From Rebecca billardiae RCC1528 (Eukaryota > Protista > Haptophyta): a stretch of 64,000 nt of DNA. Below are positions 1 to 51,502 of the stretch, in pieces. How positions within the stretch are numbered: position 1 is the stretch's first letter; each line of letters starts with the position of its first letter. Location: contig OZ251222.1 of NCBI GenBank assembly GCA_965240325.2, forward strand, positions 2,356,001 to 2,420,000. The letters are read 5' to 3'. Under the pieces are notes generated by a model. The model saw nothing but the letters and a program-made list of their open reading frames with translations, did no database searches and was not told where the DNA came from. Made by a program: the position numbers and the translations under genes.

Positions 1-893
1 AGCGCCTGGGCCTCCTTGTCCAGGAAAGGCAGCACGTCGTTCAGGTACTCCTTCCAGCACACGCCACGGCACTGCTTGCCGCGACCATTCTCATGCGTGC
101 GGCCGTGAGTGCCCGTGGCAAAATAGAGCGGCGTGATGCCGCGAGAGCAGGCGCCGGCGTAGCCATGGATCACGCAGTCACCTGCCTGGACCTGGTTCAG
201 CTTGCGCTTGGGCTCGTCACGCAGCGTCCACGACATCACCGTGCTCCGGTTCGTGACGTCGAACTTGAAGTACTTCGAGTCGGTGAAGAACAGCCTGTCA
301 ACCATCGCCTTGACTCTCTGCAGCCACCGTGCGAACGCCACCCGCTTCTTCGCCTGCTGAGCCGTGATCTGCTTCCTCACCTTGAGCGGCTCCCAATCCA
401 TCTTCTTCCGCGCCGCGCGGCGTAGCGTCTCGTCGGAGACGTCGAGCGCGGACGCATCGAGCGATCCAGCACCGACGGCGCGGCACGCAGCCTTCCGCAC
501 ACTCTGACCAGCCGGCCCGGCGCTGAGCTCGGACGTAAGCGCCGCCTGCGCCTTGGCACTGAGGCGTGGGCGTGGACCGCGCTTCGGCTTCCCGTCAGCA
601 TCGATGTGCCAGCCCTCCGTGTGCCAGTCCATGAACCACTTCTTCATCGTCTTCTCGGTGACCTCGGCCGACCGCGCCGCCCTCTGGAAAGCTGAGGCCA
701 ACGGAGAGCCTTCATTGAGGCACAGCACGCACGCGCCGATCGCATGGTGAAACCTCTCCGCAGGGCCCAGGGCCTTCGGGTTGTAATCCAGAGCAATACA
801 CTCCCGCGATACCCGCCTGTTCGGAGCGTAGCCGACGCGGTGGGCGCCTTTGCGCCCGCGCCGATCTTTGGGCGCGGTCGGCGCGCGGCCCAT
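1..893 (-). CDS. Tc1/mariner-family transposase, 5' part (truncated by window edge)
   Basis: ATG at 893-891; same sequence as the N-terminal part of ORF 11053..12354 (offset 11461). Confidence 0.9.
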   Translation of the reverse strand, partial: MGRAPTAPKDRRGRKGAHRVGYAPNRRVSRECIALDYNPKALGPAERFHHAIGACVLCLNEGSPLASAFQRAARSAEVTEKTMKKWFMDWHTEGWHIDADGKPKRGPRPRLSAKAQAALTSELSAGPAGQSVRKAACRAVGAGSLDASALDVSDETLRRAARKKMDWEPLKVRKQITAQQAKKRVAFARWLQRVKAMVDRLFFTDSKYFKFDVTNRSTVMSWTLRDEPKRKLNQVQAGDCVIHGYAGACSRGITPLYFATGTHGRTHENGRGKQCRGVCWKEYLNDVLPFLDKEAQA

Positions 894-1371
894 CAGCCGC
901 CGCCGGCTGCTTGGCCACGACCGAAGATGAGTGCACGTTACGTCCCGAGCCGCCCAAAGTTGATCTTACAGCTGACGAAGCGGTGTGGCCTCTATTCGAA
1001 CTCGTTCCGTCCATGGCGAGCGCCCCATCGACGCAGCCGCCGCGTGCGCTGGGGCCGCACGCCCTCGCGGATGTGCGCTGGGCACGAGCTCGGCGCCACG
1101 GGTTGAGCTCGTCGAGCTATGACAAGCGGCGTGGCGCAAGTCCAACCCAGTGGAGGCCCCAACTGCCGGCCCCGCCGCCGCGCGGGAGCGTCCGATTAAC
1201 CTCAGCTGCTCTGCGCAAGATGTGGGCTCCTGTGCCCCACCAACTCGCCGGAGGCGGACGACGCGCTGGGATCGCTGCACGGCGGGAATATCCCCGACCC
1301 ATGTGGACCGACGCCGGCCTCGCTCGCCGTCGCCCTCGCCCTCGTTCCGACTTTTCTACTACCTGCTCACT
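1..1371 (-). mobile_element. Element A, copy 0 (right part only): IS630/Tc1/mariner-type DNA transposon
   Basis: Matches 11462-12832 wherever compared; ends CTGCTCACT (1363-1371) followed by TA (1372-1373). Confidence 0.9.
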
Positions 1372-1373
1372 TA

Positions 1374-2163
1374 GGGACCCACAAATTTAGTTGCCGGCTG
1401 CAGCAGGCACGACTTTGTCTCAGCCCGCACGCCCGCTACGCGCCGACCCGGGCAGAGCCCATCCGCCCGCGCATGCACCAGGCCCAGCCGCGTCAGTACA
1501 TACCCACCCGGCCGCGGCACCCGCGCTCTGTGCGCCACGGTGTCGATGCGCCCGGCAGTCGGTGCGCATGCACGAGCCAGCCGGCGGGCAGCTACGGGCT
1601 GGTTTTCGGCGTGGAGCGCGGTCGTGTGAGCTGCATTAATTCAGCTGACCCCCGGCTTTTGTGCATTCGGGAGTCGTGCTGCTACGGTGGGCGTGCCACG
1701 CGCCAACTCGACGCTGGCAAAATTAGGCGACGAAAGTGCACGCGCAGCCACACGCAGCCCATATTGATGCTCTCGGAGCAGGCTCGGGCATGCACTCGAT
1801 CGGCTCTGGCTGACGGCAGCGCCAAGCTGGCGGCGCGGCGCGAGGGTGCATGCGTGGCGTGGGCGGAGCTACGTCGCACACGCACCGCGCGGCGCGCGGC
1901 TCAGCGCACGGAGGCTGCCGACAGCCGGCGGCACGCAGGCAGGTCTGCTCGCCGCCAGTCGAGCTCGCCGGCCGCCGGGTACCAAACGTCAACCCAGGAT
2001 GCACAGCCACGCCTATTTGCGAGGACTCGAGCAATCGGGTCCGGGCGCACCTCATGTGCACGGCAGTGGAGTGGGCCAAGTACGCCCCTGGTATGGTGGC
2101 GCGCCGCTGCTTTGCTGCGCTGATATGGCGAACAATGTCGGGAGGCTTAAACTTGTGAGGGAC
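1374..2163. mobile_element. Segment B (790 bp), TA-flanked, probable non-autonomous element with imperfect TIRs
   Basis: TA on both sides; left end GGGACCCACAAATTTA vs reverse complement of right end GTCCCTCACAAGTTTA (11/16); cleanly absent at junction 22625-22628. Confidence 0.6.
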
Positions 2164-2176
2164 TAAGTGAGCAGCC

Positions 2177-5100
2177 TCGGCTGAGGCCGTGAGCTGCCGT
2201 AGGCTGATCTGACCCGACAAAAGTCGGCGCGCGAGCGCGCGCGCGCGCGGCGCGGCGCCGCCCCGCTGGCACGTGGGCTCGGTGTGCCTGGGCCGCGCCG
2301 AGTGCCCCGCACCCGGATCTCGCCCAGCTAGCTCGTCCTCGCCGCGCTCTGAGGCCCCCGTAGCAGTCGTAGCTGCTCGCCGCCGCCGCAGATCGTGAAG
2401 ACCAGCTGCTGTCAGCTGCTCGCTCTGAGCCGGGACATGGGGCCGCGTGGAGGAGGCGCCGTGCGGCCGGGCGCGCGCGTGCGCGTCGAGCGGCCCCTGG
2501 GCGCACTGCTCACGCGTCGGCGCGCCCGCCCGGCGCGCGCATCATCGCTCAGTCGCGCCGCTCTGCTGAGCTAGCCGCCGCTGGTCGCAGCCGTCGGCTG
2601 AGGCCGTGAGCTGCCGTAGGCTGATCTGACCCGACAAAAGTCGGCGCGCGAGCGCGCGCGCGCGCGGCGCGGCGCCGCCCCGCTGGCACGTGGGCTCGGT
2701 GTGCCTGGGCCGCGCCGAGTGCCCCGCACCCCGATCTCGCCCAGCTAGCTCGTCCTCGCCGCGCTCTGAGGCCCCCGTAGCAGTCGTAGCTGCTCGCCGC
2801 CGCCGCAGATCGTGAAGACCAGCTGCTGTCAGCTGCTCGCTCTGAGCCGGGACATGGGGCCGCGAGGAGGAGGCGCCGTGCGGCCGGGCGCGCGCGTGCG
2901 CGTCGAGCGGCCCCGGGGCGCACTGCTCACGTGTCGGCGTGCCCGCCCGGCGCGCGCATCATCGCTCAGTCGCGCCGCTCTGCTGAGCTAGCCGCCGCTG
3001 GTCGCAGCCGTCGGCTGAGGCCGTGAGCTGCCGTCAGCTGATCTGACCCGACAAAAGTCGGCGCGAGCGCGCGCGCGCGCGCGGCGCCGCGCCGCCCCGC
3101 TGGCACGTGGGCTCGGTGTGCCTGGGCCACGCAGAGCACCCCGCACCCGGATCTCGCCCAGCTAGCTCGTCCTCGCCGCGCTCTGAGGCCCCCGTAGCAG
3201 TCGTAGCTGCTCGCCGCCGCCGCAGATCGTGAAGACCAGCTGCTGTCAGCTGCTCGCTCTGAGCCGGGACATGGGGCCGCGAGGAGGAGGCGCCGTGCGG
3301 CCGGGCGCGCGCGTGCGCGTCGAGCGGCCCCGGGGCGCACTGCTCACGCGTCGGCGTGCCCGCCCGGCGCGCGCATCATCGCTCAGTCGCGCCGCTCTGC
3401 TGAGCTAGCCGCCGCTGGTCGCAGCCGTCGGCTGAGGCCGTGAGCTGCCGTAAGCTGATCTGACCCGACAAAAGTCGGCGCGCGAGCGCGCGCGCGCGGC
3501 GCGCCGCGCCACCTCGCTGGCACGTGGGCTCGGTGCGCCTGGGCCGCGCCGAGCACCCCGCACCCGGATCTCGCCCAGCTAGCTCGTCCTCGCCGCGCTC
3601 TGAGGCCCCCGTAGCAGTCGTAGCTGCTCGCCGCCGCCGCAGATCGTGAAGACCAGCTGCTGTCAGCTGCTCGCTCTGAGCCGGGACATGGGGCCGCGTG
3701 GAGGAGACGCCGTGCGGCCGGGCGCGCGCGTGCGCGTCGAGCGGCACCCGGGCGCACTGCTCACGTGTCGGCGCGCCCGCCCGGCGCGCGCATCATCGCT
3801 CAGTCGCGCCGCTCTGCTGAGCTAGCCGCCGCTGGTCGCAGCCGTCGGCTGAGGCCGTGAGCTGCCGTAAGCTGATCTGACCCGACAAAAGTCGGCGCGC
3901 GAGCGCGCGCGCGCGGCGCGCCGCGCCACCTCGCTGGCACGTGGGCTCGGTGCGCCTGGGCCGCGCCGAGCGTCCCGCACCCCGATCGCGCCCAGCCCGC
4001 GCGTCCTCGCCGCGCTCTGAGGTCCCCGTAGCAGTCGTAGCTGCTCGCCGCCGCCGCAGATCGTGAAGACCAGTTGCTGTCAGCTGCTCGCTCTGAGCCG
4101 GGACATGGGGCCGCGAGGAGGAGGCGCCGTGCGGCCGGGCGCGCGCGTGCGCGTCGAGCGGCCCCGGGGCGCACTGCTCACGCGTCGGCGTGCCCGCCCG
4201 GCGCGCGCATCATCGCTCAGTCGCGCCGCTCTGCTGAGCTAGCCGCCGCTGGTCGCAGCCGTCGGCTGAGGCCGTGAGCTGCCGTCAGCTGATCTGACCC
4301 GACAAAAGTCGGCGCGAGCGCGCGCGCGCGCGCGGCGCCGCGCCGCCCCGCTGGCACGTGGGCTCGGTGTGCCTGGGCCACGCAGAGCACCCCGCACCCG
4401 GATCTCGCCCAGCTAGCTCGTCCTCGCCGCGCTCTGAGGCCCCCGTAGCAGTCGTAGCTGCTCGCCGCCGCCGCAGATCGTGAAGACCAGCTGCTGTCAG
4501 CTGCTCGCTCTGAGCCGGGACATGGGGCCGCGAGGAGGAGGCGCCGTGCGGCCGGGCGCGCGCGTGCGCGTCGAGCGGCCCCGGGGCGCACTGCTCACGC
4601 GTCGGCGTGCCCGCCCGGCGCGCGCATCATCGCTCAGTCGCGCCGCTCTGCTGAGCTAGCCGCCGCTGGTCGCAGCCGTCGGCTGAGGCCGTGAGCTGCC
4701 GTCAGCTGATCTGACCCGACAAAAGTCGGCGCGAGCGCGCGCGCGCGCGCGGCGCCGCGCCGCCCCGCTGGCACGTGGGCTCGGTGTGCCTGGGCCACGC
4801 AGAGCACCCCGCACCCGGATCTCGCCCAGCTAGCTCGTCCTCGCCGCGCTCTGAGGCCCCCGTAGCAGTCGTAGCTGCTCGCCGCCGCCGCAGATCGTGA
4901 AGACCAGCTGCTGTCAGCTGCTCGCTCTGAGCCGGGACATGGGGCCGCGAGGAGGAGGCGCCGTGCGGCCGGGCGCGCGCGTGCGCGTCGAGCGGCCCCG
5001 GGGCGCACTGCTCACGCGTCGGCGTGCCCGCCCGGCGCGCGCATCATCGCTCAGTCGCGCCGCTCTGCTGAGCTAGCCGCCGCTGGTCGCAGCCGTCGGC

Positions 5101-8100
5101 TGAGGCCGTGAGCTGCCGTAAGCTGATCTGACCCGACAAAAGTCGGCGCGCGAGCGCGCGCGCGCGGCGCGCCGCGCCACCTCGCTGGCACGTGGGCTCG
5201 GTGCGCCTGGGCCGCGCCGAGCACCCCGCACCCGGATCTCGCCCAGCTAGCTCGTCCTCGCCGCGCTCTGAGGCCCCCGTAGCAGTCGTAGCTGCTCGCC
5301 GCCGCCGCAGATCGTGAAGACCAGCTGCTGTCAGCTGCTCGCTCTGAGCCGGGACATGGGGCCGCGTGGAGGAGACGCCGTGCGGCCGGGCGCGCGCGTG
5401 CGCGTCGAGCGGCACCCGGGCGCACTGCTCACGTGTCGGCGTGCCCGCCCGGCGCGCGCATCATCGCTCAGTCGCGCCGCTCTGCTGAGCTAGCCGCCGC
5501 TGGTCGCAGCCGTCGGCTGAGGCCGTGAGCTGCCGTCAGCTGATCTGACCCGACAAAAGTCGGCGCGAGCGCGCGCGCGCGCGCGGCGCCGCGCCGCCCC
5601 GCTGGCACGTGGGCTCGGTGTGCCTGGGCCACGCAGAGCACCCCGCACCCGGATCTCGCCCAGCTAGCTCGTCCTCGCCGCGCTCTGAGGCCCCCGTAGC
5701 AGTCGTAGCTGCTCGCCGCCGCCGCAGATCGTGAAGACCAGCTGCTGTCAGCTGCTCGCTCTGAGCCGGGACATGGGGCCGCGAGGAGGAGGCGCCGTGC
5801 GGCCGGGCGCGCGCGTGCGCGTCGAGCGGCCCCGGGGCGCACTGCTCACGCGTCGGCGTGCCCGCCCGGCGCGCGCATCATCGCTCAGTCGCGCCGCTCT
5901 GCTGAGCTAGCCGCCGCTGGTCGCAGCCGTCGGCTGAGGCCGTGAGCTGCCGTAAGCTGATCTGACCCGACAAAAGTCGGCGCGCGAGCGCGCGCGCGCG
6001 GCGCGCCGCGCCACCTCGCTGGCACGTGGGCTCGGTGCGCCTGGGCCGCGCCGAGCACCCCGCACCCGGATCTCGCCCAGCTAGCTCGTCCTCGCCGCGC
6101 TCTGAGGCCCCCGTAGCAGTCGTAGCTGCTCGCCGCCGCCGCAGATCGTGAAGACCAGCTGCTGTCAGCTGCTCGCTCTGAGCCGGGACATGGGGCCGCG
6201 TGGAGGAGACGCCGTGCGGCCGGGCGCGCGCGTGCGCGTCGAGCGGCACCCGGGCGCACTGCTCACGTGTCGGCGCGCCCGCCCGGCGCGCGCATCATCG
6301 CTCAGTCGCGCCGCTCTGCTGAGCTAGCCGCCGCTGGTCGCAGCCGTCGGCTGAGGCCGTGAGCTGCCGTAAGCTGATCTGACCCGACAAAAGTCGGCGC
6401 GCGAGCGCGCGCGCGCGGCGCGCCGCGCCACCTCGCTGGCACGTGGGCTCGGTGCGCCTGGGCCGCGCCGAGCGTCCCGCACCCCGATCGCGCCCAGCCC
6501 GCGCGTCCTCGCCGCGCTCTGAGGTCCCCGTAGCAGTCGTAGCTGCTCGCCGCCGCCGCAGATCGTGAAGACCAGTTGCTGTCAGCTGCTCGCTCTGAGC
6601 CGGGACATGGGGCCGCGAGGAGGAGGCGCCGTGCGGCCGGGCGCGCGCGTGCGCGTCGAGCGGCCCCGGGGCGCACTGCTCACGCGTCGGCGTGCCCGCC
6701 CGGCGCGCGCATCATCGCTCAGTCGCGCCGCTCTGCTGAGCTAGCCGCCGCTGGTCGCAGCCGTCGGCTGAGGCCGTGAGCTGCCGTCAGCTGATCTGAC
6801 CCGACAAAAGTCGGCGCGAGCGCGCGCGCGCGCGCGGCGCCGCGCCGCCCCGCTGGCACGTGGGCTCGGTGTGCCTGGGCCACGCAGAGCACCCCGCACC
6901 CGGATCTCGCCCAGCTAGCTCGTCCTCGCCGCGCTCTGAGGCCCCCGTAGCAGTCGTAGCTGCTCGCCGCCGCCGCAGATCGTGAAGACCAGCTGCTGTC
7001 AGCTGCTCGCTCTGAGCCGGGACATGGGGCCGCGAGGAGGAGGCGCCGTGCGGCCGGGCGCGCGCGTGCGCGTCGAGCGGCCCCGGGGCGCACTGCTCAC
7101 GCGTCGGCGTGCCCGCCCGGCGCGCGCATCATCGCTCAGTCGCGCCGCTCTGCTGAGCTAGCCGCCGCTGGTCGCAGCCGTCGGCTGAGGCCGTGAGCTG
7201 CCGTCAGCTGATCTGACCCGACAAAAGTCGGCGCGAGCGCGCGCGCGCGCGCGGCGCCGCGCCGCCCCGCTGGCACGTGGGCTCGGTGTGCCTGGGCCAC
7301 GCAGAGCACCCCGCACCCGGATCTCGCCCAGCTAGCTCGTCCTCGCCGCGCTCTGAGGCCCCCGTAGCAGTCGTAGCTGCTCGCCGCCGCCGCAGATCGT
7401 GAAGACCAGCTGCTGTCAGCTGCTCGCTCTGAGCCGGGACATGGGGCCGCGAGGAGGAGGCGCCGTGCGGCCGGGCGCGCGCGTGCGCGTCGAGCGGCCC
7501 CGGGGCGCACTGCTCACGCGTCGGCGTGCCCGCCCGGCGCGCGCATCATCGCTCAGTCGCGCCGCTCTGCTGAGCTAGCCGCCGCTGGTCGCAGCCGTCG
7601 GCTGAGGCCGTGAGCTGCCGTAAGCTGATCTGACCCGACAAAAGTCGGCGCGCGAGCGCGCGCGCGCGGCGCGCCGCGCCACCTCGCTGGCACGTGGGCT
7701 CGGTGCGCCTGGGCCGCGCCGAGCACCCCGCACCCGGATCTCGCCCAGCTAGCTCGTCCTCGCCGCGCTCTGAGGCCCCCGTAGCAGTCGTAGCTGCTCG
7801 CCGCCGCCGCAGATCGTGAAGACCAGCTGCTGTCAGCTGCTCGCTCTGAGCCGGGACATGGGGCCGCGTGGAGGAGACGCCGTGCGGCCGGGCGCGCGCG
7901 TGCGCGTCGAGCGGCACCCGGGCGCACTGCTCACGTGTCGGCGCGCCCGCCCGGCGCGCGCATCATCGCTCAGTCGCGCCGCTCTGCTGAGCTAGCCGCC
8001 GCTGGTCGCAGCCGTCGGCTGAGGCCGTGAGCTGCCGTAAGCTGATCTGACCCGACAAAAGTCGGCGCGCGAGCGCGCGCGCGCGGCGCGCCGCGCCACC

Positions 8101-10933
8101 TCGCTGGCACGTGGGCTCGGTGCGCCTGGGCCGCGCCGAGCGTCCCGCACCCCGATCGCGCCCAGCCCGCGCGTCCTCGCCGCGCTCTGAGGTCCCCGTA
8201 GCAGTCGTAGCTGCTCGCCGCCGCCGCAGATCGTGAAGACCAGTTGCTGTCAGCTGCTCGCTCTGAGCCGGGACATGGGGCCGCGAGGAGGAGGCGCCGT
8301 GCGGCCGGGCGCGCGCGTGCGCGTCGAGCGGCCCCGGGGCGCACTGCTCACGCGTCGGCGTGCCCGCCCGGCGCGCGCATCATCGCTCAGTCGCGCCGCT
8401 CTGCTGAGCTAGCCGCCGCTGGTCGCAGCCGTCGGCTGAGGCCGTGAGCTGCCGTCAGCTGATCTGACCCGACAAAAGTCGGCGCGAGCGCGCGCGCGCG
8501 CGCGGCGCCGCGCCGCCCCGCTGGCACGTGGGCTCGGTGTGCCTGGGCCACGCAGAGCACCCCGCACCCGGATCTCGCCCAGCTAGCTCGTCCTCGCCGC
8601 GCTCTGAGGCCCCCGTAGCAGTCGTAGCTGCTCGCCGCCGCCGCAGATCGTGAAGACCAGCTGCTGTCAGCTGCTCGCTCTGAGCCGGGACATGGGGCCG
8701 CGAGGAGGAGGCGCCGTGCGGCCGGGCGCGCGCGTGCGCGTCGAGCGGCCCCGGGGCGCACTGCTCACGCGTCGGCGTGCCCGCCCGGCGCGCGCATCAT
8801 CGCTCAGTCGCGCCGCTCTGCTGAGCTAGCCGCCGCTGGTCGCAGCCGTCGGCTGAGGCCGTGAGCTGCCGTCAGCTGATCTGACCCGACAAAAGTCGGC
8901 GCGAGCGCGCGCGCGCGCGCGGCGCCGCGCCGCCCCGCTGGCACGTGGGCTCGGTGTGCCTGGGCCACGCAGAGCACCCCGCACCCGGATCTCGCCCAGC
9001 TAGCTCGTCCTCGCCGCGCTCTGAGGCCCCCGTAGCAGTCGTAGCTGCTCGCCGCCGCCGCAGATCGTGAAGACCAGCTGCTGTCAGCTGCTCGCTCTGA
9101 GCCGGGACATGGGGCCGCGAGGAGGAGGCGCCGTGCGGCCGGGCGCGCGCGTGCGCGTCGAGCGGCCCCGGGGCGCACTGCTCACGCGTCGGCGTGCCCG
9201 CCCGGCGCGCGCATCATCGCTCAGTCGCGCCGCTCTGCTGAGCTAGCCGCCGCTGGTCGCAGCCGTCGGCTGAGGCCGTGAGCTGCCGTAAGCTGATCTG
9301 ACCCGACAAAAGTCGGCGCGCGAGCGCGCGCGCGCGGCGCGCCGCGCCACCTCGCTGGCACGTGGGCTCGGTGCGCCTGGGCCGCGCCGAGCACCCCGCA
9401 CCCGGATCTCGCCCAGCTAGCTCGTCCTCGCCGCGCTCTGAGGCCCCCGTAGCAGTCGTAGCTGCTCGCCGCCGCCGCAGATCGTGAAGACCAGCTGCTG
9501 TCAGCTGCTCGCTCTGAGCCGGGACATGGGGCCGCGTGGAGGAGACGCCGTGCGGCCGGGCGCGCGCGTGCGCGTCGAGCGGCACCCGGGCGCACTGCTC
9601 ACGTGTCGGCGCGCCCGCCCGGCGCGCGCATCATCGCTCAGTCGCGCCGCTCTGCTGAGCTAGCCGCCGCTGGTCGCAGCCGTCGGCTGAGGCCGTGAGC
9701 TGCCGTAAGCTGATCTGACCCGACAAAAGTCGGCGCGCGAGCGCGCGCGCGCGGCGCGCCGCGCCACCTCGCTGGCACGTGGGCTCGGTGCGCCTGGGCC
9801 GCGCCGAGCGTCCCGCACCCCGATCGCGCCCAGCCCGCGCGTCCTCGCCGCGCTCTGAGGTCCCCGTAGCAGTCGTAGCTGCTCGCCGCCGCCGCAGATC
9901 GTGAAGACCAGTTGCTGTCAGCTGCTCGCTCTGAGCCGGGACATGGGGCCGCGAGGAGGAGGCGCCGTGCGGCCGGGCGCGCGCGTGCGCGTCGAGCGGC
10001 CCCGGGGCGCACTGCTCACGCGTCGGCGTGCCCGCCCGGCGCGCGCATCATCGCTCAGTCGCGCCGCTCTGCTGAGCTAGCCGCCGCTGGTCGCAGCCGT
10101 CGGCTGAGGCCGTGAGCTGCCGTCAGCTGATCTGACCCGACAAAAGTCGGCGCGAGCGCGCGCGCGCGCGCGGCGCCGCGCCGCCCCGCTGGCACGTGGG
10201 CTCGGTGTGCCTGGGCCACGCAGAGCACCCCGCACCCGGATCTCGCCCAGCTAGCTCGTCCTCGCCGCGCTCTGAGGCCCCCGTAGCAGTCGTAGCTGCT
10301 CGCCGCCGCCGCAGATCGTGAAGACCAGCTGCTGTCAGCTGCTCGCTCTGAGCCGGGACATGGGGCCGCGAGGAGGAGGCGCCGTGCGGCCGGGCGCGCG
10401 CGTGCGCGTCGAGCGGCCCCGGGGCGCACTGCTCACGCGTCGGCGTGCCCGCCCGGCGCGCGCATCATCGCTCAGTCGCGCCGCTCTGCTGAGCTAGCCG
10501 CCGCTGGTCGCAGCCGTCGGCTGAGGCCGTGAGCTGCCGTAGGCTGATCTGACCCGACAAAAGTCGGCGCGCGAGCGCGCGCTCGCGCGGCGCGGCGCCG
10601 CCCCGCTGGCACGTGGGCTCGGTGTGCCTGGGCCGCGCCGAGTGCCCCGCACCCCGATCTCGCCCAGCTAGCTCGTCCTCGCCGCGCTCTGAGGCCCCCG
10701 TAGCAGTCGTAGCTGCTCGCCGCCGCCGCAGATCGTGAAGACCAGTTGCTGTCAGCTGCTCGCTCTGAGCCGGGACATGGGGCCGCGTGGAGGAGGCGCC
10801 GTGCGGCCGGGCGCGCGCGCGCGCGTCGAGCGGCCCCGGGGCGCACTGCTCACGCGTCGGCGTGCCCGCCCGGCGCGCACATCATCGCTCAGTCGCGCCG
10901 CTCTGCTGAGCTAGCCGCCGCTGGTCGCAGCTG
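2177..10933. repeat. 417-bp tandem satellite, 21 monomers, with a 1668-bp higher-order repeat
   Basis: Exact 417-bp period in the sequence and ORF track; variant order a b c d e c c d c d e c c d e c c d e c z. Confidence 0.97.
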
Positions 10934-11052
10934 TCGTGAGACGTGACGTTAGACGTAGAGTAAGCTATAGCCTATAGGCTGATATGATATGACTCGAGAT
11001 CTACTATACTGAGCAGCTAATAAACTATACCATCATTGTCCGACACTGCTCT

Positions 11053-12354
11053 TCAGCGCACGCGCTGCTCACCCTTGGTCTCGACGCAGTCCTGCAGCCG
11101 ACGCCGATAGGATTTGAACAGCGCCTGGATGAACTTCTTGTCGTTCCGTACCTCCTCGAACTTAGCCTTCACCACCTCCTCGAACTCCTTGAAGGTTGGC
11201 CGCTGCTTGCTCGGGTTGTCGGTGCACCACTTGTGCTTCCATGCGTTGAGAAGCTGCTCCACGCGCGCCCAGACATGCTCAATGAGCGACAAGTCGGCGC
11301 TGTTCGGCGGCCAGCTACGGCCCGGCTGACCCTCGGTCGACTTGGGGCCAAGGTGTCCCTCGGGGCCAAACCGCTCGTCGAGCCATTGGCGCACAGCCAG
11401 CGCCGTGTGGGGTGAGGCACTGTCCTGCTGGAAGATCATCTGTCTGATGAAGTTGCCGAAGAGCGCCTGGGCCTCCTTGTCCAGGAAAGGCAGCACGTCG
11501 TTCAGGTACTCCTTCCAGCACACGCCACGGCACTGCTTGCCGCGACCATTCTCATGCGTGCGGCCGTGAGTGCCCGTGGCAAAATAGAGCGGCGTGATGC
11601 CGCGAGAGCAGGCGCCGGCGTAGCCATGGATCACGCAGTCACCTGCCTGGACCTGGTTCAGCTTGCGCTTGGGCTCGTCACGCAGCGTCCACGACATCAC
11701 CGTGCTCCGGTTCGTGACGTCGAACTTGAAGTACTTCGAGTCGGTGAAGAACAGCCTGTCAACCATCGCCTTGACTCTCTGCAGCCACCGTGCGAACGCC
11801 ACCCGCTTCTTCGCCTGCTGAGCCGTGATCTGCTTCCTCACCTTGAGCGGCTCCCAATCCATCTTCTTCCGCGCCGCGCGGCGTAGCGTCTCGTCGGAGA
11901 CGTCGAGCGCGGACGCATCGAGCGATCCAGCACCGACGGCGCGGCACGCAGCCTTCCGCACACTCTGACCAGCCGGCCCGGCGCTGAGCTCGGACGTAAG
12001 CGCCGCCTGCGCCTTGGCACTGAGGCGTGGGCGTGGACCGCGCTTCGGCTTCCCGTCAGCATCGATGTGCCAGCCCTCCGTGTGCCAGTCCATGAACCAC
12101 TTCTTCATCGTCTTCTCGGTGACCTCGGCCGACCGCGCCGCCCTCTGGAAAGCTGAGGCCAACGGAGAGCCTTCATTGAGGCACAGCACGCACGCGCCGA
12201 TCGCATGGTGAAACCTCTCCGCAGGGCCCAGGGCCTTCGGGTTGTAATCCAGAGCAATACACTCCCGCGATACCCGCCTGTTCGGAGCGTAGCCGACGCG
12301 GTGGGCGCCTTTGCGCCCGCGCCGATCTTTGGGCGCGGTCGGCGCGCGGCCCAT
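11053..12354 (-). CDS. IS630/Tc1/mariner DDE transposase, 433 aa (DD47E)
   Basis: GPRPR linker, FFTDSK (first D), FQQDSASPH (second D) and WPPNSADLSLIEHVW (E) match Tc1 motifs GRPR, FSDE, FQQDNA and WPxxSPDLNPIE. Confidence 0.95.
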   Translation of the reverse strand: MGRAPTAPKDRRGRKGAHRVGYAPNRRVSRECIALDYNPKALGPAERFHHAIGACVLCLNEGSPLASAFQRAARSAEVTEKTMKKWFMDWHTEGWHIDADGKPKRGPRPRLSAKAQAALTSELSAGPAGQSVRKAACRAVGAGSLDASALDVSDETLRRAARKKMDWEPLKVRKQITAQQAKKRVAFARWLQRVKAMVDRLFFTDSKYFKFDVTNRSTVMSWTLRDEPKRKLNQVQAGDCVIHGYAGACSRGITPLYFATGTHGRTHENGRGKQCRGVCWKEYLNDVLPFLDKEAQALFGNFIRQMIFQQDSASPHTALAVRQWLDERFGPEGHLGPKSTEGQPGRSWPPNSADLSLIEHVWARVEQLLNAWKHKWCTDNPSKQRPTFKEFEEVVKAKFEEVRNDKKFIQALFKSYRRRLQDCVETKGEQRVR

Positions 12355-13624: not shown

Positions 13625-13637
13625 TAAGTGAGCAGCC

Positions 13638-25600: not shown

Positions 25601-28600
25601 AAAGTCGGCGCGCGAGCGCGCGCGCGCGGCGCGCCGCGCCACCTCGCTGGCACGTGGGCTCGGTGCGCCTGGGCCGCGCCGAGCACCCCGCACCCGGATC
25701 TCGCCCAGCTAGCTCGTCCTCGCCGCGCTCTGAGGCCCCCGTAGCAGTCGTAGCTGCTCGCCGCCGCCGCAGATCGTGAAGACCAGCTGCTGTCAGCTGC
25801 TCGCTCTGAGCCGGGACATGGGGCCGCGTGGAGGAGACGCCGTGCGGCCGGGCGCGCGCGTGCGCGTCGAGCGGCACCCGGGCGCACTGCTCACGTGTCG
25901 GCGTGCCCGCCCGGCGCGCGCATCATCGCTCAGTCGCGCCGCTCTGCTGAGCTAGCCGCCGCTGGTCGCAGCCGTCGGCTGAGGCCGTGAGCTGCCGTCA
26001 GCTGATCTGACCCGACAAAAGTCGGCGCGAGCGCGCGCGCGCGCGCGGCGCCGCGCCGCCCCGCTGGCACGTGGGCTCGGTGTGCCTGGGCCACGCAGAG
26101 CACCCCGCACCCGGATCTCGCCCAGCTAGCTCGTCCTCGCCGCGCTCTGAGGCCCCCGTAGCAGTCGTAGCTGCTCGCCGCCGCCGCAGATCGTGAAGAC
26201 CAGCTGCTGTCAGCTGCTCGCTCTGAGCCGGGACATGGGGCCGCGAGGAGGAGGCGCCGTGCGGCCGGGCGCGCGCGTGCGCGTCGAGCGGCCCCGGGGC
26301 GCACTGCTCACGCGTCGGCGTGCCCGCCCGGCGCGCGCATCATCGCTCAGTCGCGCCGCTCTGCTGAGCTAGCCGCCGCTGGTCGCAGCCGTCGGCTGAG
26401 GCCGTGAGCTGCCGTAAGCTGATCTGACCCGACAAAAGTCGGCGCGCGAGCGCGCGCGCGCGGCGCGCCGCGCCACCTCGCTGGCACGTGGGCTCGGTGC
26501 GCCTGGGCCGCGCCGAGCACCCCGCACCCGGATCTCGCCCAGCTAGCTCGTCCTCGCCGCGCTCTGAGGCCCCCGTAGCAGTCGTAGCTGCTCGCCGCCG
26601 CCGCAGATCGTGAAGACCAGCTGCTGTCAGCTGCTCGCTCTGAGCCGGGACATGGGGCCGCGAGGAGGAGGCGCCGTGCGGCCGGGCGCGCGCGTGCGCG
26701 TCGAGCGGCCCCGGGGCGCACTGCTCACGCGTCGGCGTGCCCGCCCGGCGCGCGCATCATCGCTCAGTCGCGCCGCTCTGCTGAGCTAGCCGCCGCTGGT
26801 CGCAGCCGTCGGCTGAGGCCGTGAGCTGCCGTAAGCTGATCTGACCCGACAAAAGTCGGCGCGCGAGCGCGCGCGCGCGGCGCGCCGCGCCACCTCGCTG
26901 GCACGTGGGCTCGGTGCGCCTGGGCCGCGCCGAGCACCCCGCACCCGGATCTCGCCCAGCTAGCTCGTCCTCGCCGCGCTCTGAGGCCCCCGTAGCAGTC
27001 GTAGCTGCTCGCCGCCGCCGCAGATCGTGAAGACCAGCTGCTGTCAGCTGCTCGCTCTGAGCCGGGACATGGGGCCGCGTGGAGGAGACGCCGTGCGGCC
27101 GGGCGCGCGCGTGCGCGTCGAGCGGCACCCGGGCGCACTGCTCACGTGTCGGCGCGCCCGCCCGGCGCGCGCATCATCGCTCAGTCGCGCCGCTCTGCTG
27201 AGCTAGCCGCCGCTGGTCGCAGCCGTCGGCTGAGGCCGTGAGCTGCCGTAAGCTGATCTGACCCGACAAAAGTCGGCGCGCGAGCGCGCGCGCGCGGCGC
27301 GCCGCGCCACCTCGCTGGCACGTGGGCTCGGTGCGCCTGGGCCGCGCCGAGCGTCCCGCACCCCGATCGCGCCCAGCCCGCGCGTCCTCGCCGCGCTCTG
27401 AGGTCCCCGTAGCAGTCGTAGCTGCTCGCCGCCGCCGCAGATCGTGAAGACCAGTTGCTGTCAGCTGCTCGCTCTGAGCCGGGACATGGGGCCGCGAGGA
27501 GGAGGCGCCGTGCGGCCGGGCGCGCGCGTGCGCGTCGAGCGGCCCCGGGGCGCACTGCTCACGCGTCGGCGTGCCCGCCCGGCGCGCGCATCATCGCTCA
27601 GTCGCGCCGCTCTGCTGAGCTAGCCGCCGCTGGTCGCAGCCGTCGGCTGAGGCCGTGAGCTGCCGTCAGCTGATCTGACCCGACAAAAGTCGGCGCGAGC
27701 GCGCGCGCGCGCGCGGCGCCGCGCCGCCCCGCTGGCACGTGGGCTCGGTGTGCCTGGGCCACGCAGAGCACCCCGCACCCGGATCTCGCCCAGCTAGCTC
27801 GTCCTCGCCGCGCTCTGAGGCCCCCGTAGCAGTCGTAGCTGCTCGCCGCCGCCGCAGATCGTGAAGACCAGCTGCTGTCAGCTGCTCGCTCTGAGCCGGG
27901 ACATGGGGCCGCGAGGAGGAGGCGCCGTGCGGCCGGGCGCGCGCGTGCGCGTCGAGCGGCCCCGGGGCGCACTGCTCACGCGTCGGCGTGCCCGCCCGGC
28001 GCGCGCATCATCGCTCAGTCGCGCCGCTCTGCTGAGCTAGCCGCCGCTGGTCGCAGCCGTCGGCTGAGGCCGTGAGCTGCCGTCAGCTGATCTGACCCGA
28101 CAAAAGTCGGCGCGAGCGCGCGCGCGCGCGCGGCGCCGCGCCGCCCCGCTGGCACGTGGGCTCGGTGTGCCTGGGCCACGCAGAGCACCCCGCACCCGGA
28201 TCTCGCCCAGCTAGCTCGTCCTCGCCGCGCTCTGAGGCCCCCGTAGCAGTCGTAGCTGCTCGCCGCCGCCGCAGATCGTGAAGACCAGCTGCTGTCAGCT
28301 GCTCGCTCTGAGCCGGGACATGGGGCCGCGAGGAGGAGGCGCCGTGCGGCCGGGCGCGCGCGTGCGCGTCGAGCGGCCCCGGGGCGCACTGCTCACGCGT
28401 CGGCGTGCCCGCCCGGCGCGCGCATCATCGCTCAGTCGCGCCGCTCTGCTGAGCTAGCCGCCGCTGGTCGCAGCCGTCGGCTGAGGCCGTGAGCTGCCGT
28501 AAGCTGATCTGACCCGACAAAAGTCGGCGCGCGAGCGCGCGCGCGCGGCGCGCCGCGCCACCTCGCTGGCACGTGGGCTCGGTGCGCCTGGGCCGCGCCG

Positions 28601-31600
28601 AGCACCCCGCACCCGGATCTCGCCCAGCTAGCTCGTCCTCGCCGCGCTCTGAGGCCCCCGTAGCAGTCGTAGCTGCTCGCCGCCGCCGCAGATCGTGAAG
28701 ACCAGCTGCTGTCAGCTGCTCGCTCTGAGCCGGGACATGGGGCCGCGTGGAGGAGACGCCGTGCGGCCGGGCGCGCGCGTGCGCGTCGAGCGGCACCCGG
28801 GCGCACTGCTCACGTGTCGGCGCGCCCGCCCGGCGCGCGCATCATCGCTCAGTCGCGCCGCTCTGCTGAGCTAGCCGCCGCTGGTCGCAGCCGTCGGCTG
28901 AGGCCGTGAGCTGCCGTAAGCTGATCTGACCCGACAAAAGTCGGCGCGCGAGCGCGCGCGCGCGGCGCGCCGCGCCACCTCGCTGGCACGTGGGCTCGGT
29001 GCGCCTGGGCCGCGCCGAGCGTCCCGCACCCCGATCGCGCCCAGCCCGCGCGTCCTCGCCGCGCTCTGAGGTCCCCGTAGCAGTCGTAGCTGCTCGCCGC
29101 CGCCGCAGATCGTGAAGACCAGTTGCTGTCAGCTGCTCGCTCTGAGCCGGGACATGGGGCCGCGAGGAGGAGGCGCCGTGCGGCCGGGCGCGCGCGTGCG
29201 CGTCGAGCGGCCCCGGGGCGCACTGCTCACGCGTCGGCGTGCCCGCCCGGCGCGCGCATCATCGCTCAGTCGCGCCGCTCTGCTGAGCTAGCCGCCGCTG
29301 GTCGCAGCCGTCGGCTGAGGCCGTGAGCTGCCGTCAGCTGATCTGACCCGACAAAAGTCGGCGCGAGCGCGCGCGCGCGCGCGGCGCCGCGCCGCCCCGC
29401 TGGCACGTGGGCTCGGTGTGCCTGGGCCACGCAGAGCACCCCGCACCCGGATCTCGCCCAGCTAGCTCGTCCTCGCCGCGCTCTGAGGCCCCCGTAGCAG
29501 TCGTAGCTGCTCGCCGCCGCCGCAGATCGTGAAGACCAGCTGCTGTCAGCTGCTCGCTCTGAGCCGGGACATGGGGCCGCGAGGAGGAGGCGCCGTGCGG
29601 CCGGGCGCGCGCGTGCGCGTCGAGCGGCCCCGGGGCGCACTGCTCACGCGTCGGCGTGCCCGCCCGGCGCGCGCATCATCGCTCAGTCGCGCCGCTCTGC
29701 TGAGCTAGCCGCCGCTGGTCGCAGCCGTCGGCTGAGGCCGTGAGCTGCCGTCAGCTGATCTGACCCGACAAAAGTCGGCGCGAGCGCGCGCGCGCGCGCG
29801 GCGCCGCGCCGCCCCGCTGGCACGTGGGCTCGGTGTGCCTGGGCCACGCAGAGCACCCCGCACCCGGATCTCGCCCAGCTAGCTCGTCCTCGCCGCGCTC
29901 TGAGGCCCCCGTAGCAGTCGTAGCTGCTCGCCGCCGCCGCAGATCGTGAAGACCAGCTGCTGTCAGCTGCTCGCTCTGAGCCGGGACATGGGGCCGCGAG
30001 GAGGAGGCGCCGTGCGGCCGGGCGCGCGCGTGCGCGTCGAGCGGCCCCGGGGCGCACTGCTCACGCGTCGGCGTGCCCGCCCGGCGCGCGCATCATCGCT
30101 CAGTCGCGCCGCTCTGCTGAGCTAGCCGCCGCTGGTCGCAGCCGTCGGCTGAGGCCGTGAGCTGCCGTAAGCTGATCTGACCCGACAAAAGTCGGCGCGC
30201 GAGCGCGCGCGCGCGGCGCGCCGCGCCACCTCGCTGGCACGTGGGCTCGGTGCGCCTGGGCCGCGCCGAGCACCCCGCACCCGGATCTCGCCCAGCTAGC
30301 TCGTCCTCGCCGCGCTCTGAGGCCCCCGTAGCAGTCGTAGCTGCTCGCCGCCGCCGCAGATCGTGAAGACCAGCTGCTGTCAGCTGCTCGCTCTGAGCCG
30401 GGACATGGGGCCGCGTGGAGGAGACGCCGTGCGGCCGGGCGCGCGCGTGCGCGTCGAGCGGCACCCGGGCGCACTGCTCACGTGTCGGCGCGCCCGCCCG
30501 GCGCGCGCATCATCGCTCAGTCGCGCCGCTCTGCTGAGCTAGCCGCCGCTGGTCGCAGCCGTCGGCTGAGGCCGTGAGCTGCCGTAAGCTGATCTGACCC
30601 GACAAAAGTCGGCGCGCGAGCGCGCGCGCGCGGCGCGCCGCGCCACCTCGCTGGCACGTGGGCTCGGTGCGCCTGGGCCGCGCCGAGCGTCCCGCACCCC
30701 GATCGCGCCCAGCCCGCGCGTCCTCGCCGCGCTCTGAGGTCCCCGTAGCAGTCGTAGCTGCTCGCCGCCGCCGCAGATCGTGAAGACCAGTTGCTGTCAG
30801 CTGCTCGCTCTGAGCCGGGACATGGGGCCGCGAGGAGGAGGCGCCGTGCGGCCGGGCGCGCGCGTGCGCGTCGAGCGGCCCCGGGGCGCACTGCTCACGC
30901 GTCGGCGTGCCCGCCCGGCGCGCGCATCATCGCTCAGTCGCGCCGCTCTGCTGAGCTAGCCGCCGCTGGTCGCAGCCGTCGGCTGAGGCCGTGAGCTGCC
31001 GTCAGCTGATCTGACCCGACAAAAGTCGGCGCGAGCGCGCGCGCGCGCGCGGCGCCGCGCCGCCCCGCTGGCACGTGGGCTCGGTGTGCCTGGGCCACGC
31101 AGAGCACCCCGCACCCGGATCTCGCCCAGCTAGCTCGTCCTCGCCGCGCTCTGAGGCCCCCGTAGCAGTCGTAGCTGCTCGCCGCCGCCGCAGATCGTGA
31201 AGACCAGCTGCTGTCAGCTGCTCGCTCTGAGCCGGGACATGGGGCCGCGAGGAGGAGGCGCCGTGCGGCCGGGCGCGCGCGTGCGCGTCGAGCGGCCCCG
31301 GGGCGCACTGCTCACGCGTCGGCGTGCCCGCCCGGCGCGCGCATCATCGCTCAGTCGCGCCGCTCTGCTGAGCTAGCCGCCGCTGGTCGCAGCCGTCGGC
31401 TGAGGCCGTGAGCTGCCGTAGGCTGATCTGACCCGACAAAAGTCGGCGCGCGAGCGCGCGCTCGCGCGGCGCGGCGCCGCCCCGCTGGCACGTGGGCTCG
31501 GTGTGCCTGGGCCGCGCCGAGTGCCCCGCACCCCGATCTCGCCCAGCTAGCTCGTCCTCGCCGCGCTCTGAGGCCCCCGTAGCAGTCGTAGCTGCTCGCC

Positions 31601-31812
31601 GCCGCCGCAGATCGTGAAGACCAGTTGCTGTCAGCTGCTCGCTCTGAGCCGGGACATGGGGCCGCGTGGAGGAGGCGCCGTGCGGCCGGGCGCGCGCGCG
31701 CGCGTCGAGCGGCCCCGGGGCGCACTGCTCACGCGTCGGCGTGCCCGCCCGGCGCGCACATCATCGCTCAGTCGCGCCGCTCTGCTGAGCTAGCCGCCGC
31801 TGGTCGCAGCTG
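22639..31812. repeat. 417-bp tandem satellite, 22 monomers
   Basis: Variant order a b c d e c c d c [d/c] d e c c d e c c d e c z. Confidence 0.97.
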
Positions 31813-31931
31813 TCGTGAGACGTGACGTTAGACGTAGAGTAAGCTATAGCCTATAGGCTGATATGATATGACTCGAGATCTACTATACTGAGCAGCTAAT
31901 AAACTATACCATCATTGTCCGACACTGCTCT

Positions 31932-33233
31932 TCAGCGCACGCGCTGCTCACCCTTGGTCTCGACGCAGTCCTGCAGCCGACGCCGATAGGATTTGAACAG
32001 CGCCTGGATGAACTTCTTGTCGTTCCGTACCTCCTCGAACTTAGCCTTCACCACCTCCTCGAACTCCTTGAAGGTTGGCCGCTGCTTGCTCGGGTTGTCG
32101 GTGCACCACTTGTGCTTCCATGCGTTGAGAAGCTGCTCCACGCGCGCCCAGACATGCTCAATGAGCGACAAGTCGGCGCTGTTCGGCGGCCAGCTACGGC
32201 CCGGCTGACCCTCGGTCGACTTGGGGCCAAGGTGTCCCTCGGGGCCAAACCGCTCGTCGAGCCATTGGCGCACAGCCAGCGCCGTGTGGGGTGAGGCACT
32301 GTCCTGCTGGAAGATCATCTGTCTGATGAAGTTGCCGAAGAGCGCCTGGGCCTCCTTGTCCAGGAAAGGCAGCACGTCGTTCAGGTACTCCTTCCAGCAC
32401 ACGCCACGGCACTGCTTGCCGCGACCATTCTCATGCGTGCGGCCGTGAGTGCCCGTGGCAAAATAGAGCGGCGTGATGCCGCGAGAGCAGGCGCCGGCGT
32501 AGCCATGGATCACGCAGTCACCTGCCTGGACCTGGTTCAGCTTGCGCTTGGGCTCGTCACGCAGCGTCCACGACATCACCGTGCTCCGGTTCGTGACGTC
32601 GAACTTGAAGTACTTCGAGTCGGTGAAGAACAGCCTGTCAACCATCGCCTTGACTCTCTGCAGCCACCGTGCGAACGCCACCCGCTTCTTCGCCTGCTGA
32701 GCCGTGATCTGCTTCCTCACCTTGAGCGGCTCCCAATCCATCTTCTTCCGCGCCGCGCGGCGTAGCGTCTCGTCGGAGACGTCGAGCGCGGACGCATCGA
32801 GCGATCCAGCACCGACGGCGCGGCACGCAGCCTTCCGCACACTCTGACCAGCCGGCCCGGCGCTGAGCTCGGACGTAAGCGCCGCCTGCGCCTTGGCACT
32901 GAGGCGTGGGCGTGGACCGCGCTTCGGCTTCCCGTCAGCATCGATGTGCCAGCCCTCCGTGTGCCAGTCCATGAACCACTTCTTCATCGTCTTCTCGGTG
33001 ACCTCGGCCGACCGCGCCGCCCTCTGGAAAGCTGAGGCCAACGGAGAGCCTTCATTGAGGCACAGCACGCACGCGCCGATCGCATGGTGAAACCTCTCCG
33101 CAGGGCCCAGGGCCTTCGGGTTGTAATCCAGAGCAATACACTCCCGCGATACCCGCCTGTTCGGAGCGTAGCCGACGCGGTGGGCGCCTTTGCGCCCGCG
33201 CCGATCTTTGGGCGCGGTCGGCGCGCGGCCCAT
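31932..33233 (-). CDS. IS630/Tc1/mariner transposase, 433 aa
   Basis: Translation identical to the other copies. Confidence 0.95.
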   Translation of the reverse strand: MGRAPTAPKDRRGRKGAHRVGYAPNRRVSRECIALDYNPKALGPAERFHHAIGACVLCLNEGSPLASAFQRAARSAEVTEKTMKKWFMDWHTEGWHIDADGKPKRGPRPRLSAKAQAALTSELSAGPAGQSVRKAACRAVGAGSLDASALDVSDETLRRAARKKMDWEPLKVRKQITAQQAKKRVAFARWLQRVKAMVDRLFFTDSKYFKFDVTNRSTVMSWTLRDEPKRKLNQVQAGDCVIHGYAGACSRGITPLYFATGTHGRTHENGRGKQCRGVCWKEYLNDVLPFLDKEAQALFGNFIRQMIFQQDSASPHTALAVRQWLDERFGPEGHLGPKSTEGQPGRSWPPNSADLSLIEHVWARVEQLLNAWKHKWCTDNPSKQRPTFKEFEEVVKAKFEEVRNDKKFIQALFKSYRRRLQDCVETKGEQRVR

Positions 33234-33713
33234 CAGCCGCCGCCGGCTGCTTGGCCACGACCGAAGATGAGTGCACGTTACGTCCCGAGCCGCCCAAAGT
33301 TGATCTTACAGCTGACGAAGCGGTGTGGCCTCTATTCGAACTCGTTCCGTCCATGGCGAGCGCCCCATCGACGCAGCCGCCGCGTGCGCTGGGGCCGCAC
33401 GCCCTCGCGGATGTGCGCTGGGCACGAGCTCGGCGCCACGGGTTGAGCTCGTCGAGCTATGACAAGCGGCGTGGCGCAAGTCCAACCCAGTGGAGGCCCC
33501 AACTGCCGGCCCCGCCGCCGCGCGGGAGCGTCCGATTAACCTCAGCTGCTCTGCGCAAGATGTGGGCTCCTGTGCCCCACCAACTCGCCGGAGGCGGACG
33601 ACGCGCTGGGATCGCTGCACGGCGGGAATATCCCCGACCCATGTGGACCGACGCCGGCCTCGCTCGCCGTCGCCCTCGCCCTCGTTCCGACTTTTCTACT
33701 ACCTGCTCACTTA

Positions 33714-34503
33714 GGGACCCACAAATTTAGTTGCCGGCTGCAGCAGGCACGACTTTGTCTCAGCCCGCACGCCCGCTACGCGCCGACCCGGGCAGAGCCC
33801 ATCCGCCCGCGCATGCACCAGGCCCAGCCGCGTCAGTACATACCCACCCGGCCGCGGCACCCGCGCTCTGTGCGCCACGGTGTCGATGCGCCCGGCAGTC
33901 GGTGCGCATGCACGAGCCAGCCGGCGGGCAGCTACGGGCTGGTTTTCGGCGTGGAGCGCGGTCGTGTGAGCTGCATTAATTCAGCTGACCCCCGGCTTTT
34001 GTGCATTCGGGAGTCGTGCTGCTACGGTGGGCGTGCCACGCGCCAACTCGACGCTGGCAAAATTAGGCGACGAAAGTGCACGCGCAGCCACACGCAGCCC
34101 ATATTGATGCTCTCGGAGCAGGCTCGGGCATGCACTCGATCGGCTCTGGCTGACGGCAGCGCCAAGCTGGCGGCGCGGCGCGAGGGTGCATGCGTGGCGT
34201 GGGCGGAGCTACGTCGCACACGCACCGCGCGGCGCGCGGCTCAGCGCACGGAGGCTGCCGACAGCCGGCGGCACGCAGGCAGGTCTGCTCGCCGCCAGTC
34301 GAGCTCGCCGGCCGCCGGGTACCAAACGTCAACCCAGGATGCACAGCCACGCCTATTTGCGAGGACTCGAGCAATCGGGTCCGGGCGCACCTCATGTGCA
34401 CGGCAGTGGAGTGGGCCAAGTACGCCCCTGGTATGGTGGCGCGCCGCTGCTTTGCTGCGCTGATATGGCGAACAATGTCGGGAGGCTTAAACTTGTGAGG
34501 GAC
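33714..34503. mobile_element. Segment B, copy 3; ends the array
   Basis: Same 790 bp; followed by TATACAAG and then unique DNA. Confidence 0.6.
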
Positions 34504-34665
34504 TATACAAGTTGTTTTCTCTGACTCAGTCTGAGTCCCGAACTGGCGCACATAGCTTTTCAGTGTCGTCGACAGCCAGCCGTGCGCCTGGGCTCGTCTT
34601 TTTATAAGTATTGTTTTTCGTCATCGCTCGTCGTGGTGATTTGGAATTCGAACGCGGCATCAACG

Positions 34666-51397: not shown

Positions 51398-51502
<105 letters not shown>

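Follow-up and report, generated by a model that had tools for sequence, protein, structure and literature searches.

The modules and joints of the array

What kind of locus sets a transposase gene, a long satellite, and further copies of both end to end? We examined a stretch of 64,000 nucleotides from the haptophyte Rebecca billardiae RCC1528 (GenBank assembly GCA_965240325.2, contig OZ251222.1, positions 2,356,001 to 2,420,000 of the forward strand), called the window here, in which an earlier note had described a satellite-carrying Tc1/mariner transposon, element A, stacked head-to-tail. The locus is best read as real, combining a transposon-borne satellite with a tandem transposon array, and what is most novel about it is a conserved, unexplained two-module layout. 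The window probably holds one end of a cluster formed by a young two-module transposon family of the IS630/Tc1/mariner superfamily.

The window sequence is eukaryotic and GC-rich, with 60-68% GC in the gene part and ~75% in the satellite. Positions 1-34505 consist of repeated blocks in the order A0-B-A1-B-A2-A3-B, and unique DNA begins at 34506. The blocks are built from two module types, A and B, with TA on both sides of each. Four copies of element A are present, one of which (A0) is truncated by the window start. The outer edge of the array is formed by B, not A, which meets unique DNA at 34506. The features of the array, in window coordinates, are as follows.

1-1371, minus strand: A0, the right part of element A, 100% identical to 11462-12832; part of the transposase open reading frame (ORF) at 1-893 and the right tip CTGCTCACT at 1363-1371
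1374-2163, no strand assigned: module B copy 1, 790 bp, non-coding, with flat codon GC; TA at 1372-1373 and 2164-2165; the three copies of B are 100% identical
2166-12832, minus strand: A1, complete element of 10,667 bp, comprising left tip, 21 satellite monomers, core (10937-12832), and right tip
2166-10936, no strand assigned: A1 satellite with a 417-bp unit, 21 monomers plus 14 nt; variant order ABCDECCFCDECCDECCDECG
11053-12354, minus strand: A1 transposase gene, 433 amino acids (aa), with D205, D311, and E359 (DD47E); GC at third codon positions (GC3) 0.83, host-gene-like
12835-13624, no strand assigned: second copy of module B, bounded by TA at 12833-12834 and 13625-13626; its inverted ends, GGGACCCACAAATTTAG and CTTAAACTTGTGAGGGAC, are imperfect
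13627-22625, minus strand: A2, complete element of 8,999 bp; 17 monomers at 13627-20729 (ABHBCDECCDECIDECG), core at 20730-22625, transposase at 20846-22147
22617-22636, no strand assigned: A2/A3 joint, a perfect 20-bp palindrome free of B, CTGCTCACT-TA-AGTGAGCAG (right tip, single TA, left tip)
22628-33711, minus strand: A3, complete element of 11,084 bp; 22 monomers at 22628-31815, core at 31816-33711, transposase at 31932-33233; equal to A1 plus a recombinant monomer, J
33714-34503, no strand assigned: module B copy 3, the outer array edge; TA at 33712-33713 and 34504-34505, then unique DNA beginning TACAAG

The cores and the B copies are 100% identical, as are the 2.7-kb segments between satellite blocks; the satellite arrays vary. 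Both modules have terminal inverted repeats (TIRs), as elements of the IS630/Tc1/mariner superfamily do. Element A begins with AGTGAGCAG, and its other end, CTGCTCACT, is the exact reverse complement of this. These perfect inverted ends of 9 bp are unusually short, and the chance of such a match falling exactly at both TA-bounded ends is low (p ~4e-6). Module B begins with GGGACCCACAAATTTAG and ends with CTTAAACTTGTGAGGGAC, whose inverted match covers 12 of 17 positions.

Much of what the earlier note had said of element A was borne out. The core of ~1.9 kb measures 1,896 bp and is 100% identical across copies. Each of the claimed 9-bp TIRs, AGTGAGCAG and CTGCTCACT, adjoins TA. The transposase is intact as a 433-aa minus-strand ORF in three copies, the fourth being cut by the window start, and the 417-bp satellite does lie inside the left end, in blocks that begin at the left tip (2166-10936, 13627-20729, and 22628-31815). 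That description was accurate for A but omitted module B. Likewise, the claim of at least four copies stacked at TA holds for the copy number but not for direct stacking, which occurs at the A2/A3 joint only; the other joints contain B.

The A2/A3 joint reads CTGCTCACT-TA-AGTGAGCAG, and the B joints read CTGCTCACT-TA-B-TA-AGTGAGCAG. All joints are at TA, and B is flanked by two TAs at the very place where A2/A3 has a single one. The difference between the B-containing and the B-free joint is exactly the outcome of B insertion into TA or of scar-free B loss. Intact tips and exactly one target duplication, as found at A2/A3, are the published signature of a double insertion (PMC5932611).

We compared these structures with run X1, the sole public run used, which consists of contigs of unknown kind. 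In X1, the core and B show no differences from the window. The A-to-B joint is present, and so is the A-to-A joint, in a contig that runs from 33713 via AGTGAGCAGCCTCGG into satellite. The right end of B leads into a different flank in X1, which contains almost nothing of the unique flank of this locus. In addition, the core is found at 99.9-100% identity, with B where it is covered, in short contigs from five further accessions; Logan contigs L003 to L006 are among these independent data. Because both joint types occur in independent contigs, the joints are unlikely to be inventions of the assembly.

One of these contigs, L003 (Logan ERR14847150), tracks the A core at 100% and departs 12 nt before the satellite, at window position 10949. 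Beyond the departure (L003:1887-2245) come TA and GGTGGGTCCC, a tip like that of B, and then 359 bp unrelated to the window. Either the satellite arm is missing from this variant copy, or the contig records a nested insertion.

A Tc1-like transposase of a divergent branch

The transposase is encoded by a single-exon ORF of 433 aa on the minus strand (11053-12354, 20846-22147, and 31932-33233). Pfam matches it weakly, a word-index protein search returned only the transposase itself and no close relatives, and a JGI metagenome scan turned up nothing related to it. Searching PDB with the lone sequence gave no match, and its single-sequence AlphaFold 2 (AF2) model was poor. An exhaustive HMMER search found 401 relatives, mostly of ~350-370 aa and 25-35% identical; the nearest is 37% identical. 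The transposase matches IS630 in NCBIfam (E 6.7e-12), and a profile of 34 relatives matches the catalytic domain of Sleeping Beauty (7e-39), Mos1 (3e-17), and the DNA-binding domain of Tc3.

The alignment of relatives identifies D205, D311, and E359 as invariant. The second D and the E are separated by 47 residues here (DD47E) and by 32-46 residues in the aligned relatives. An alignment-based AF2 model reached a predicted local distance difference test score (pLDDT) of 83.5. Its best Foldseek matches are full-length Mos1 and the catalytic domains of Sleeping Beauty and SETMAR, with template-modeling scores by target of 0.75-0.81 to the catalytic domains. N-terminal helix-turn-helix domains are followed by an RNase-H-like DDE/D domain, the architecture of IS630/Tc1/mariner transposases. 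The GC content at the three codon positions (0.62/0.48/0.83) resembles that of host genes. By its sequence and modeled fold, the protein is an intact Tc1-like DDE enzyme from a divergent branch.

The earlier claim of a self-sufficient element of Tc1/mariner type agrees with these results, which describe a Tc1/IS630-type element that is apparently autonomous and very young. The family is apparently still active. Assignment to the Tc1 family in the strict sense (DD34E) is ruled out by the spacing of 47 rather than 34 residues. We also rejected Luffy (Mariner-3) of Tisochrysis lutea: none of four transposase peptide strings occurs in the supplements of the paper describing it, and the printed Luffy fragment is unlike the transposase as judged by eye only.

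A second transposase, P0002 (438 aa, DD41E), which is 35-37% identical, was found in contigs L001 and L002 (Logan ERR14847151 and ERR14847148), both too short to display ends or a partner module. Because P0002 comes from the same sequencing study as element A, the organism probably hosts a sister family.

A satellite built from the tip of its carrier

Counted from the left tip, the three satellite arrays contain exactly 21, 17, and 22 monomers, each time followed by the opening 14 nt of one more. The satellite starts at the very left tip of A, and the first monomer contains the tip itself; later monomers carry GGTCGCAGC in its place. The 14-nt remnant past the last monomer resembles the tip region. 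There are 10 monomer variants. All three arrays open with variants A and B and close with variant G, and their interior follows a C-D-E-C higher-order pattern. Variant J is a D/C recombinant, and the A3 array equals the A1 array plus J.

No satellite occurs outside element A within the window. In run X1, the satellite depth relative to the core gave no sign of a large satellite excess outside A, contig depths not being copy numbers. The array lies inside the ends of the element, derives from element sequence, and differs in copy number between copies, as expected of a transposon-borne satellite. Because the three arrays share the same diverged edge monomers, the satellite must have been copied along with the element, in line with the earlier claim that the element carries its own satellite inside its ends. 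The common edge monomers and the relation of A3 to A1 imply that the array predates these copies and was later altered by unequal exchange while the cores stayed identical.

We propose that tandem duplication affected the 417 bp of the transposase module that adjoin the tip on the 3' side of the gene. It probably began when the tip sequence exchanged unequally with a 14-nt stretch resembling it, located 417 bp farther inward. The array, now at 17-22 copies here, shifts its copy number fast by unequal exchange and, lying within the tips, would be copied whenever the module moves.

Every monomer contains a palindromic box, CCGAC-AAAA-GTCGG (e.g., window 2217-2230), and AAAAGTCGG recurs once, inverted, 17-25 nt from the other tip of A. 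Contig L036, whose transposase is 28% identical, opens with a similar box, CCGACCAAAAGTCG (L036:9-24). The box may be a binding site for the transposase and is a candidate for one in each monomer.

A partner module in distant relatives

Is B an accidental neighbor of element A? ORFs within B have flat codon GC and no coding signal. It matched no known RNA family in Rfam and is not a tRNA-derived element. Folding of two modules gave no strong RNA-structure signal (z -2.3 for the B module of the window and -1.4 for that of L031). A 17-mer from the end of B had 24 matches in the JGI metagenome scan, all attributed to chance.

For relatives of the transposase, as for the window, we use a for a transposase module and b for the module beside it in any family. 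On the metagenome scaffold L031, which encodes a 28% identical transposase, the order is flank-TA-b (792 bp)-TA-a (2,200 bp)-TA-a-TA-b-TA-a; its a copies are identical, its b has good inverted ends, and TA stands at every joint. L032, from another sample, reads a-b-a. L033 (27% identical) has overlapping contig ends that define a 3,217-bp unit of b (793 bp), TA, a, and TA. L036 (28%, DD35E) reads a-TA-b with a b of 768 bp, the right flank of which reads TT and then TA, and L037 (27%, DD36E) reads a-TA-b-TA with a b of 746 bp. In L036 and L037, b lies ~350 bp past the stop codon and is bounded by inverted repeats of 25-26 nt that are 92% complementary. L034 has TA and a b-like tip 30 nt past the stop codon, where the contig soon ends.

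A TIR-bounded module of 746-793 bp thus lies beside the transposase module in five families, with TA on both sides in four of the five. The transposases of the families with this two-module layout are only 26-41% identical. The b modules of the relatives do not align with B of the window or with one another beyond a weak resemblance of the tips, and they have no coding signal. Because b of 746-793 bp also adjoins a in distant relatives, the a-TA-b layout is predicted to be ancestral to the clade, and B is a partner conserved within the clade rather than a chance MITE (miniature inverted-repeat transposable element). For the same reason, the conservation of B beside the transposase module, element A with its 9-bp TIRs is probably not the entire mobile unit. 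Satellite-type tandem repeats are absent from the relatives, in which we found only microrepeats of 5-9 bp within b of L037. Because no relative carries a satellite in module a, the satellite is a late, lineage-specific addition in the family of this alga.

Two further observations concern the layout. When read in transposase orientation from the outer flank, window 22628-34505 and L031:1-6254 both have the order b-a-a-b-a, which may be a coincidence or may reflect how arrays start. In addition, where b meets unique DNA, the TA of the joint is followed by a further TA in four separate cases (window 34504-34507, L031:206-209, L037:2661-2665, and run X1). The resulting TATA hints at a TATA-like target preference.

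What moves and how the cluster grew

The reading that we consider probable is that of a young two-module family. Module a supplies a single-exon DD47E transposase between 9-bp inverted tips, and module b is non-coding with imperfect inverted tips of its own. The cluster would grow by insertion of new modules into the TA flanking a resident tip, giving double insertions with one TA per joint, by unequal recombination between the repeated modules, or by both. The seven joints of the window all lie at a tip TA; therefore, they are not independent random insertions into a genome that holds millions of TA sites. The routes that remain are insertion targeted to the tip TA, a few such events followed by unequal recombination, and integration of a concatemer. 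A3 is nearly identical to A1 yet adjoins A2. An A1-like copy that inserted into the TA separating A2 from B accounts for this more readily than unequal crossing-over does, with scar-free B loss as the alternative. The earlier suggestion that the element inserts next to its own ends is thus one possible mechanism, in line with the double-insertion signature at A2/A3, but unequal exchange and composite or concatemer forms account for most joints equally well. Current activity, the tips used by the transposase, and the mode of array growth are inferences. The mobile unit may be A, A-B, or B-A-B; A has real tips and may move alone.

Several alternatives bear on these points. The 100% identity of the cores and B copies, together with an array that is spanned by no reads and a sole run made up of contigs, would fit a mis-assembly in which identical repeats turned one or two genuine copies into an apparent array. 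We consider such an artefact quite improbable, however, since the differences among the three satellite arrays are structured and include a recombinant monomer, and since both joint types occur in separate public data. It is scarcely credible that core plus B inserted site-specifically into a 417-bp satellite array that was already there, although the blocks all consist of complete monomers followed by 14 nt. We rejected this idea on several grounds: every block opens with a tip-bearing monomer and closes with one shared edge monomer, only 8 of 14 positions agree in the 14 nt that would have to be a duplication, and the palindromic A-A joint fixes the ends of the element. The window also has no satellite outside A. 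Integration of an excised a+b circle or a rolling-circle product as a head-to-tail multimer would account for the orientation of the joints, all 14 of which (window and relatives) are head-to-tail, and for the overlapping contig ends of L033, whose unit is a+b; rolling-circle replication has been proposed for Bari1 arrays (PMC5932611). The units vary in satellite length, however, one of them lacks B, and L033 is equally explained by a collapsed assembly, which leaves a concatemer improbable.

The identity of the mobile unit divides the other explanations. If A alone were mobile through its 9-bp tips and B were an incidental MITE, A would target the TA at its own ends and build arrays that seed heterochromatin or a centromere. 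The A2/A3 joint (tip-TA-tip with intact tips, also in X1) fits this, as do the position of A3, which suits insertion of an A1-like copy into the A2/B TA, and the a-a joint of L031. Against it stand the B-type modules that 5-6 deeply diverged families have next to their transposase modules, the end of the array in B, and likely coding sequence ~80 bp from the array with recognizable genes 7-23 kb away, so that we regard it as unlikely. A composite organized like a long terminal repeat (LTR) element, in which only the B tips are used, B-A-B moves as a whole, arrays form by crossing-over between B copies, and the A-A joint results from B loss, is possible but doubtful. B has inverted tips and TA flanks, the inverted repeats of the relatives' b modules are much better than those of a, the outer edge is b both in the window and in L031, and the circular-looking L033 is what a collapsed b-a-b would give. 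Such a composite leaves the perfect 9-bp A tips beside TA unexplained, and it needs scar-free B loss for the precise A-A joints here and in L031. Run X1, moreover, lists no B-to-left-A joint, which suits an A-B unit better than B-A-B. Equally tentative is a more specific form of the two-module reading: a widespread and undescribed Tc1/IS630 clade would consist of obligate pairs, a transposase module and a TIR module (non-coding, ~750-790 bp) separated by a single TA, that insert preferentially at their own tip TA and thereby build head-to-tail arrays, here with a satellite that formed from a subterminal region and possibly offers a binding box in each monomer.

Other observations besides that missing joint weigh against the two-module family that we favor. 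The tips of a and b are dissimilar, and the likeness of tips between families is weak; that one transposase acts on both is a guess. The relatives are known from short contigs of metagenomes or draft assemblies, where collapse of repeated modules may have occurred, and a collapsed b-a-b would resemble a-b or a circle. We saw neither a transposition event nor an empty site in unique DNA, and no insertion in the window has both flanks in unique DNA with a matching empty site that would reveal its TA target duplication. Of the array's outer edges, the window includes the right one only, where the target duplication of the whole unit is not readable, and the number of units lacks confirmation by spanning reads.

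Comparison with known systems

Satellite-carrying transposons and head-to-tail stacking, two of the oddities claimed in the earlier note, have precedents (PMC12628747, PMC5932611, PMC4877112). McGurk and Barbash (2018) reported head-to-tail dimers of the P element and hobo that carry exactly one target duplication per joint, and a hobo dimer that expanded to 13-19 copies in a single strain (PMC5932611). As in those tandems, the tips here are intact, one target duplication (TA) separates them, the copies are young and identical, and the array lies outside pericentric heterochromatin. Unlike them, this array alternates two module types, has units of 9-11 kb with an internal satellite, and shares its syntax with distant relatives, so that a trait of the family seems likelier than an accident. 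Bari1 of Drosophila melanogaster is also a Tc1-like element with tens of head-to-tail copies (PMC4877112, PMC5932611). Its joints, in contrast, lack some inverted-repeat nucleotides and have no target duplication, its cluster is heterochromatic and fixed, and it has neither a partner module nor an internal satellite.

Transposon-borne satellites have been reviewed and include the Xenopus Tc1/mariner MITE miDNA4, tandem-repeat MITEs, and Helitrons (PMC12628747). They share with element A a tandem array within the ends, a copy number that varies, and spread with the element. Here, in contrast, the carrier encodes an intact transposase, the arrays reach 9 kb, and the monomer is the element's own subterminal 417 bp counted from the tip.

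In bacterial composite transposons and (IS30)2-type dimers, end-bearing module copies bracket a segment, and abutted ends are separated by a spacer of the length of a target duplication. Similarly, two direct copies of B bracket a segment here, and right and left ends abut with a TA-length spacer. This element is eukaryotic and Tc1-like, however; its bracketed segment encodes the transposase and has its own tips, and use of the outer ends is hypothetical. Sleeping Beauty, of the inverted repeat/direct repeat (IR/DR) type, has inverted repeats of ~230 bp and is DD34E. The transposase fold, DDE triad, and apparent TA target are alike, and possibly more than one binding site per arm; the 9-bp tips, DD47E spacing, and repetition of one arm 17-22 times are not.

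The differences from these precedents are an apparently autonomous carrier, a monomer taken from its own end, intact tips at the joints, and a conserved partner module. We found no description of a composite or two-module eukaryotic Tc1 element in the searchable literature, with most subscription journals, Repbase, and Dfam outside the search. Within that scope no described family was recognized, as the earlier note had also stated. The conversion of elements into satellites has mostly been inferred from old, decayed remains. At this locus, both steps are visible in identical, seemingly intact copies: an internal array that grows from the element's own end, and whole elements stacked with one TA per joint. 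The partner module may point to an undescribed organization of ends in Tc1-like elements. If the transposase is active, end choice, self-targeted insertion, and the effects of repeated binding sites on transposition could be tested at the bench. If the obligate-pair version were true, the family would be a naturally occurring and still active source of satellite DNA, made and spread by a transposon.

Surroundings of the array

The earlier idea that the array could seed heterochromatin or a centromere is unsupported: likely coding sequence lies ~80 bp away, and recognizable genes lie at 7-23 kb. The nearest such sequence is a 475-aa ORF at 34582-36009 on the plus strand, which begins 77 bp from the array edge and is codon-biased (GC3 0.81). 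It has no Pfam match, and the atlas clusters nearest to it consist of hypothetical proteins from haptophytes and giant viruses. The ORF is almost missing from run X1, which does contain the transposon. The right half of the window, 7-23 kb from the array, encodes a major facilitator superfamily (MFS) transporter, a sulfotransferase-like protein, and a DHHC palmitoyltransferase. A search of 34506-64000 found no remnants of A, B, or the satellite.

A perfect (AT)50 microsatellite occupies 51401-51501, in a locally GC-poor stretch (53% GC). At the far end of the window (58598-64000), blocks of 199-214-bp tandem units stand in opposite orientation and form a large modular palindrome, with opposed pairs at 60252-61034 and 62294-62884 and at 59050-59622 and 63514-64000.

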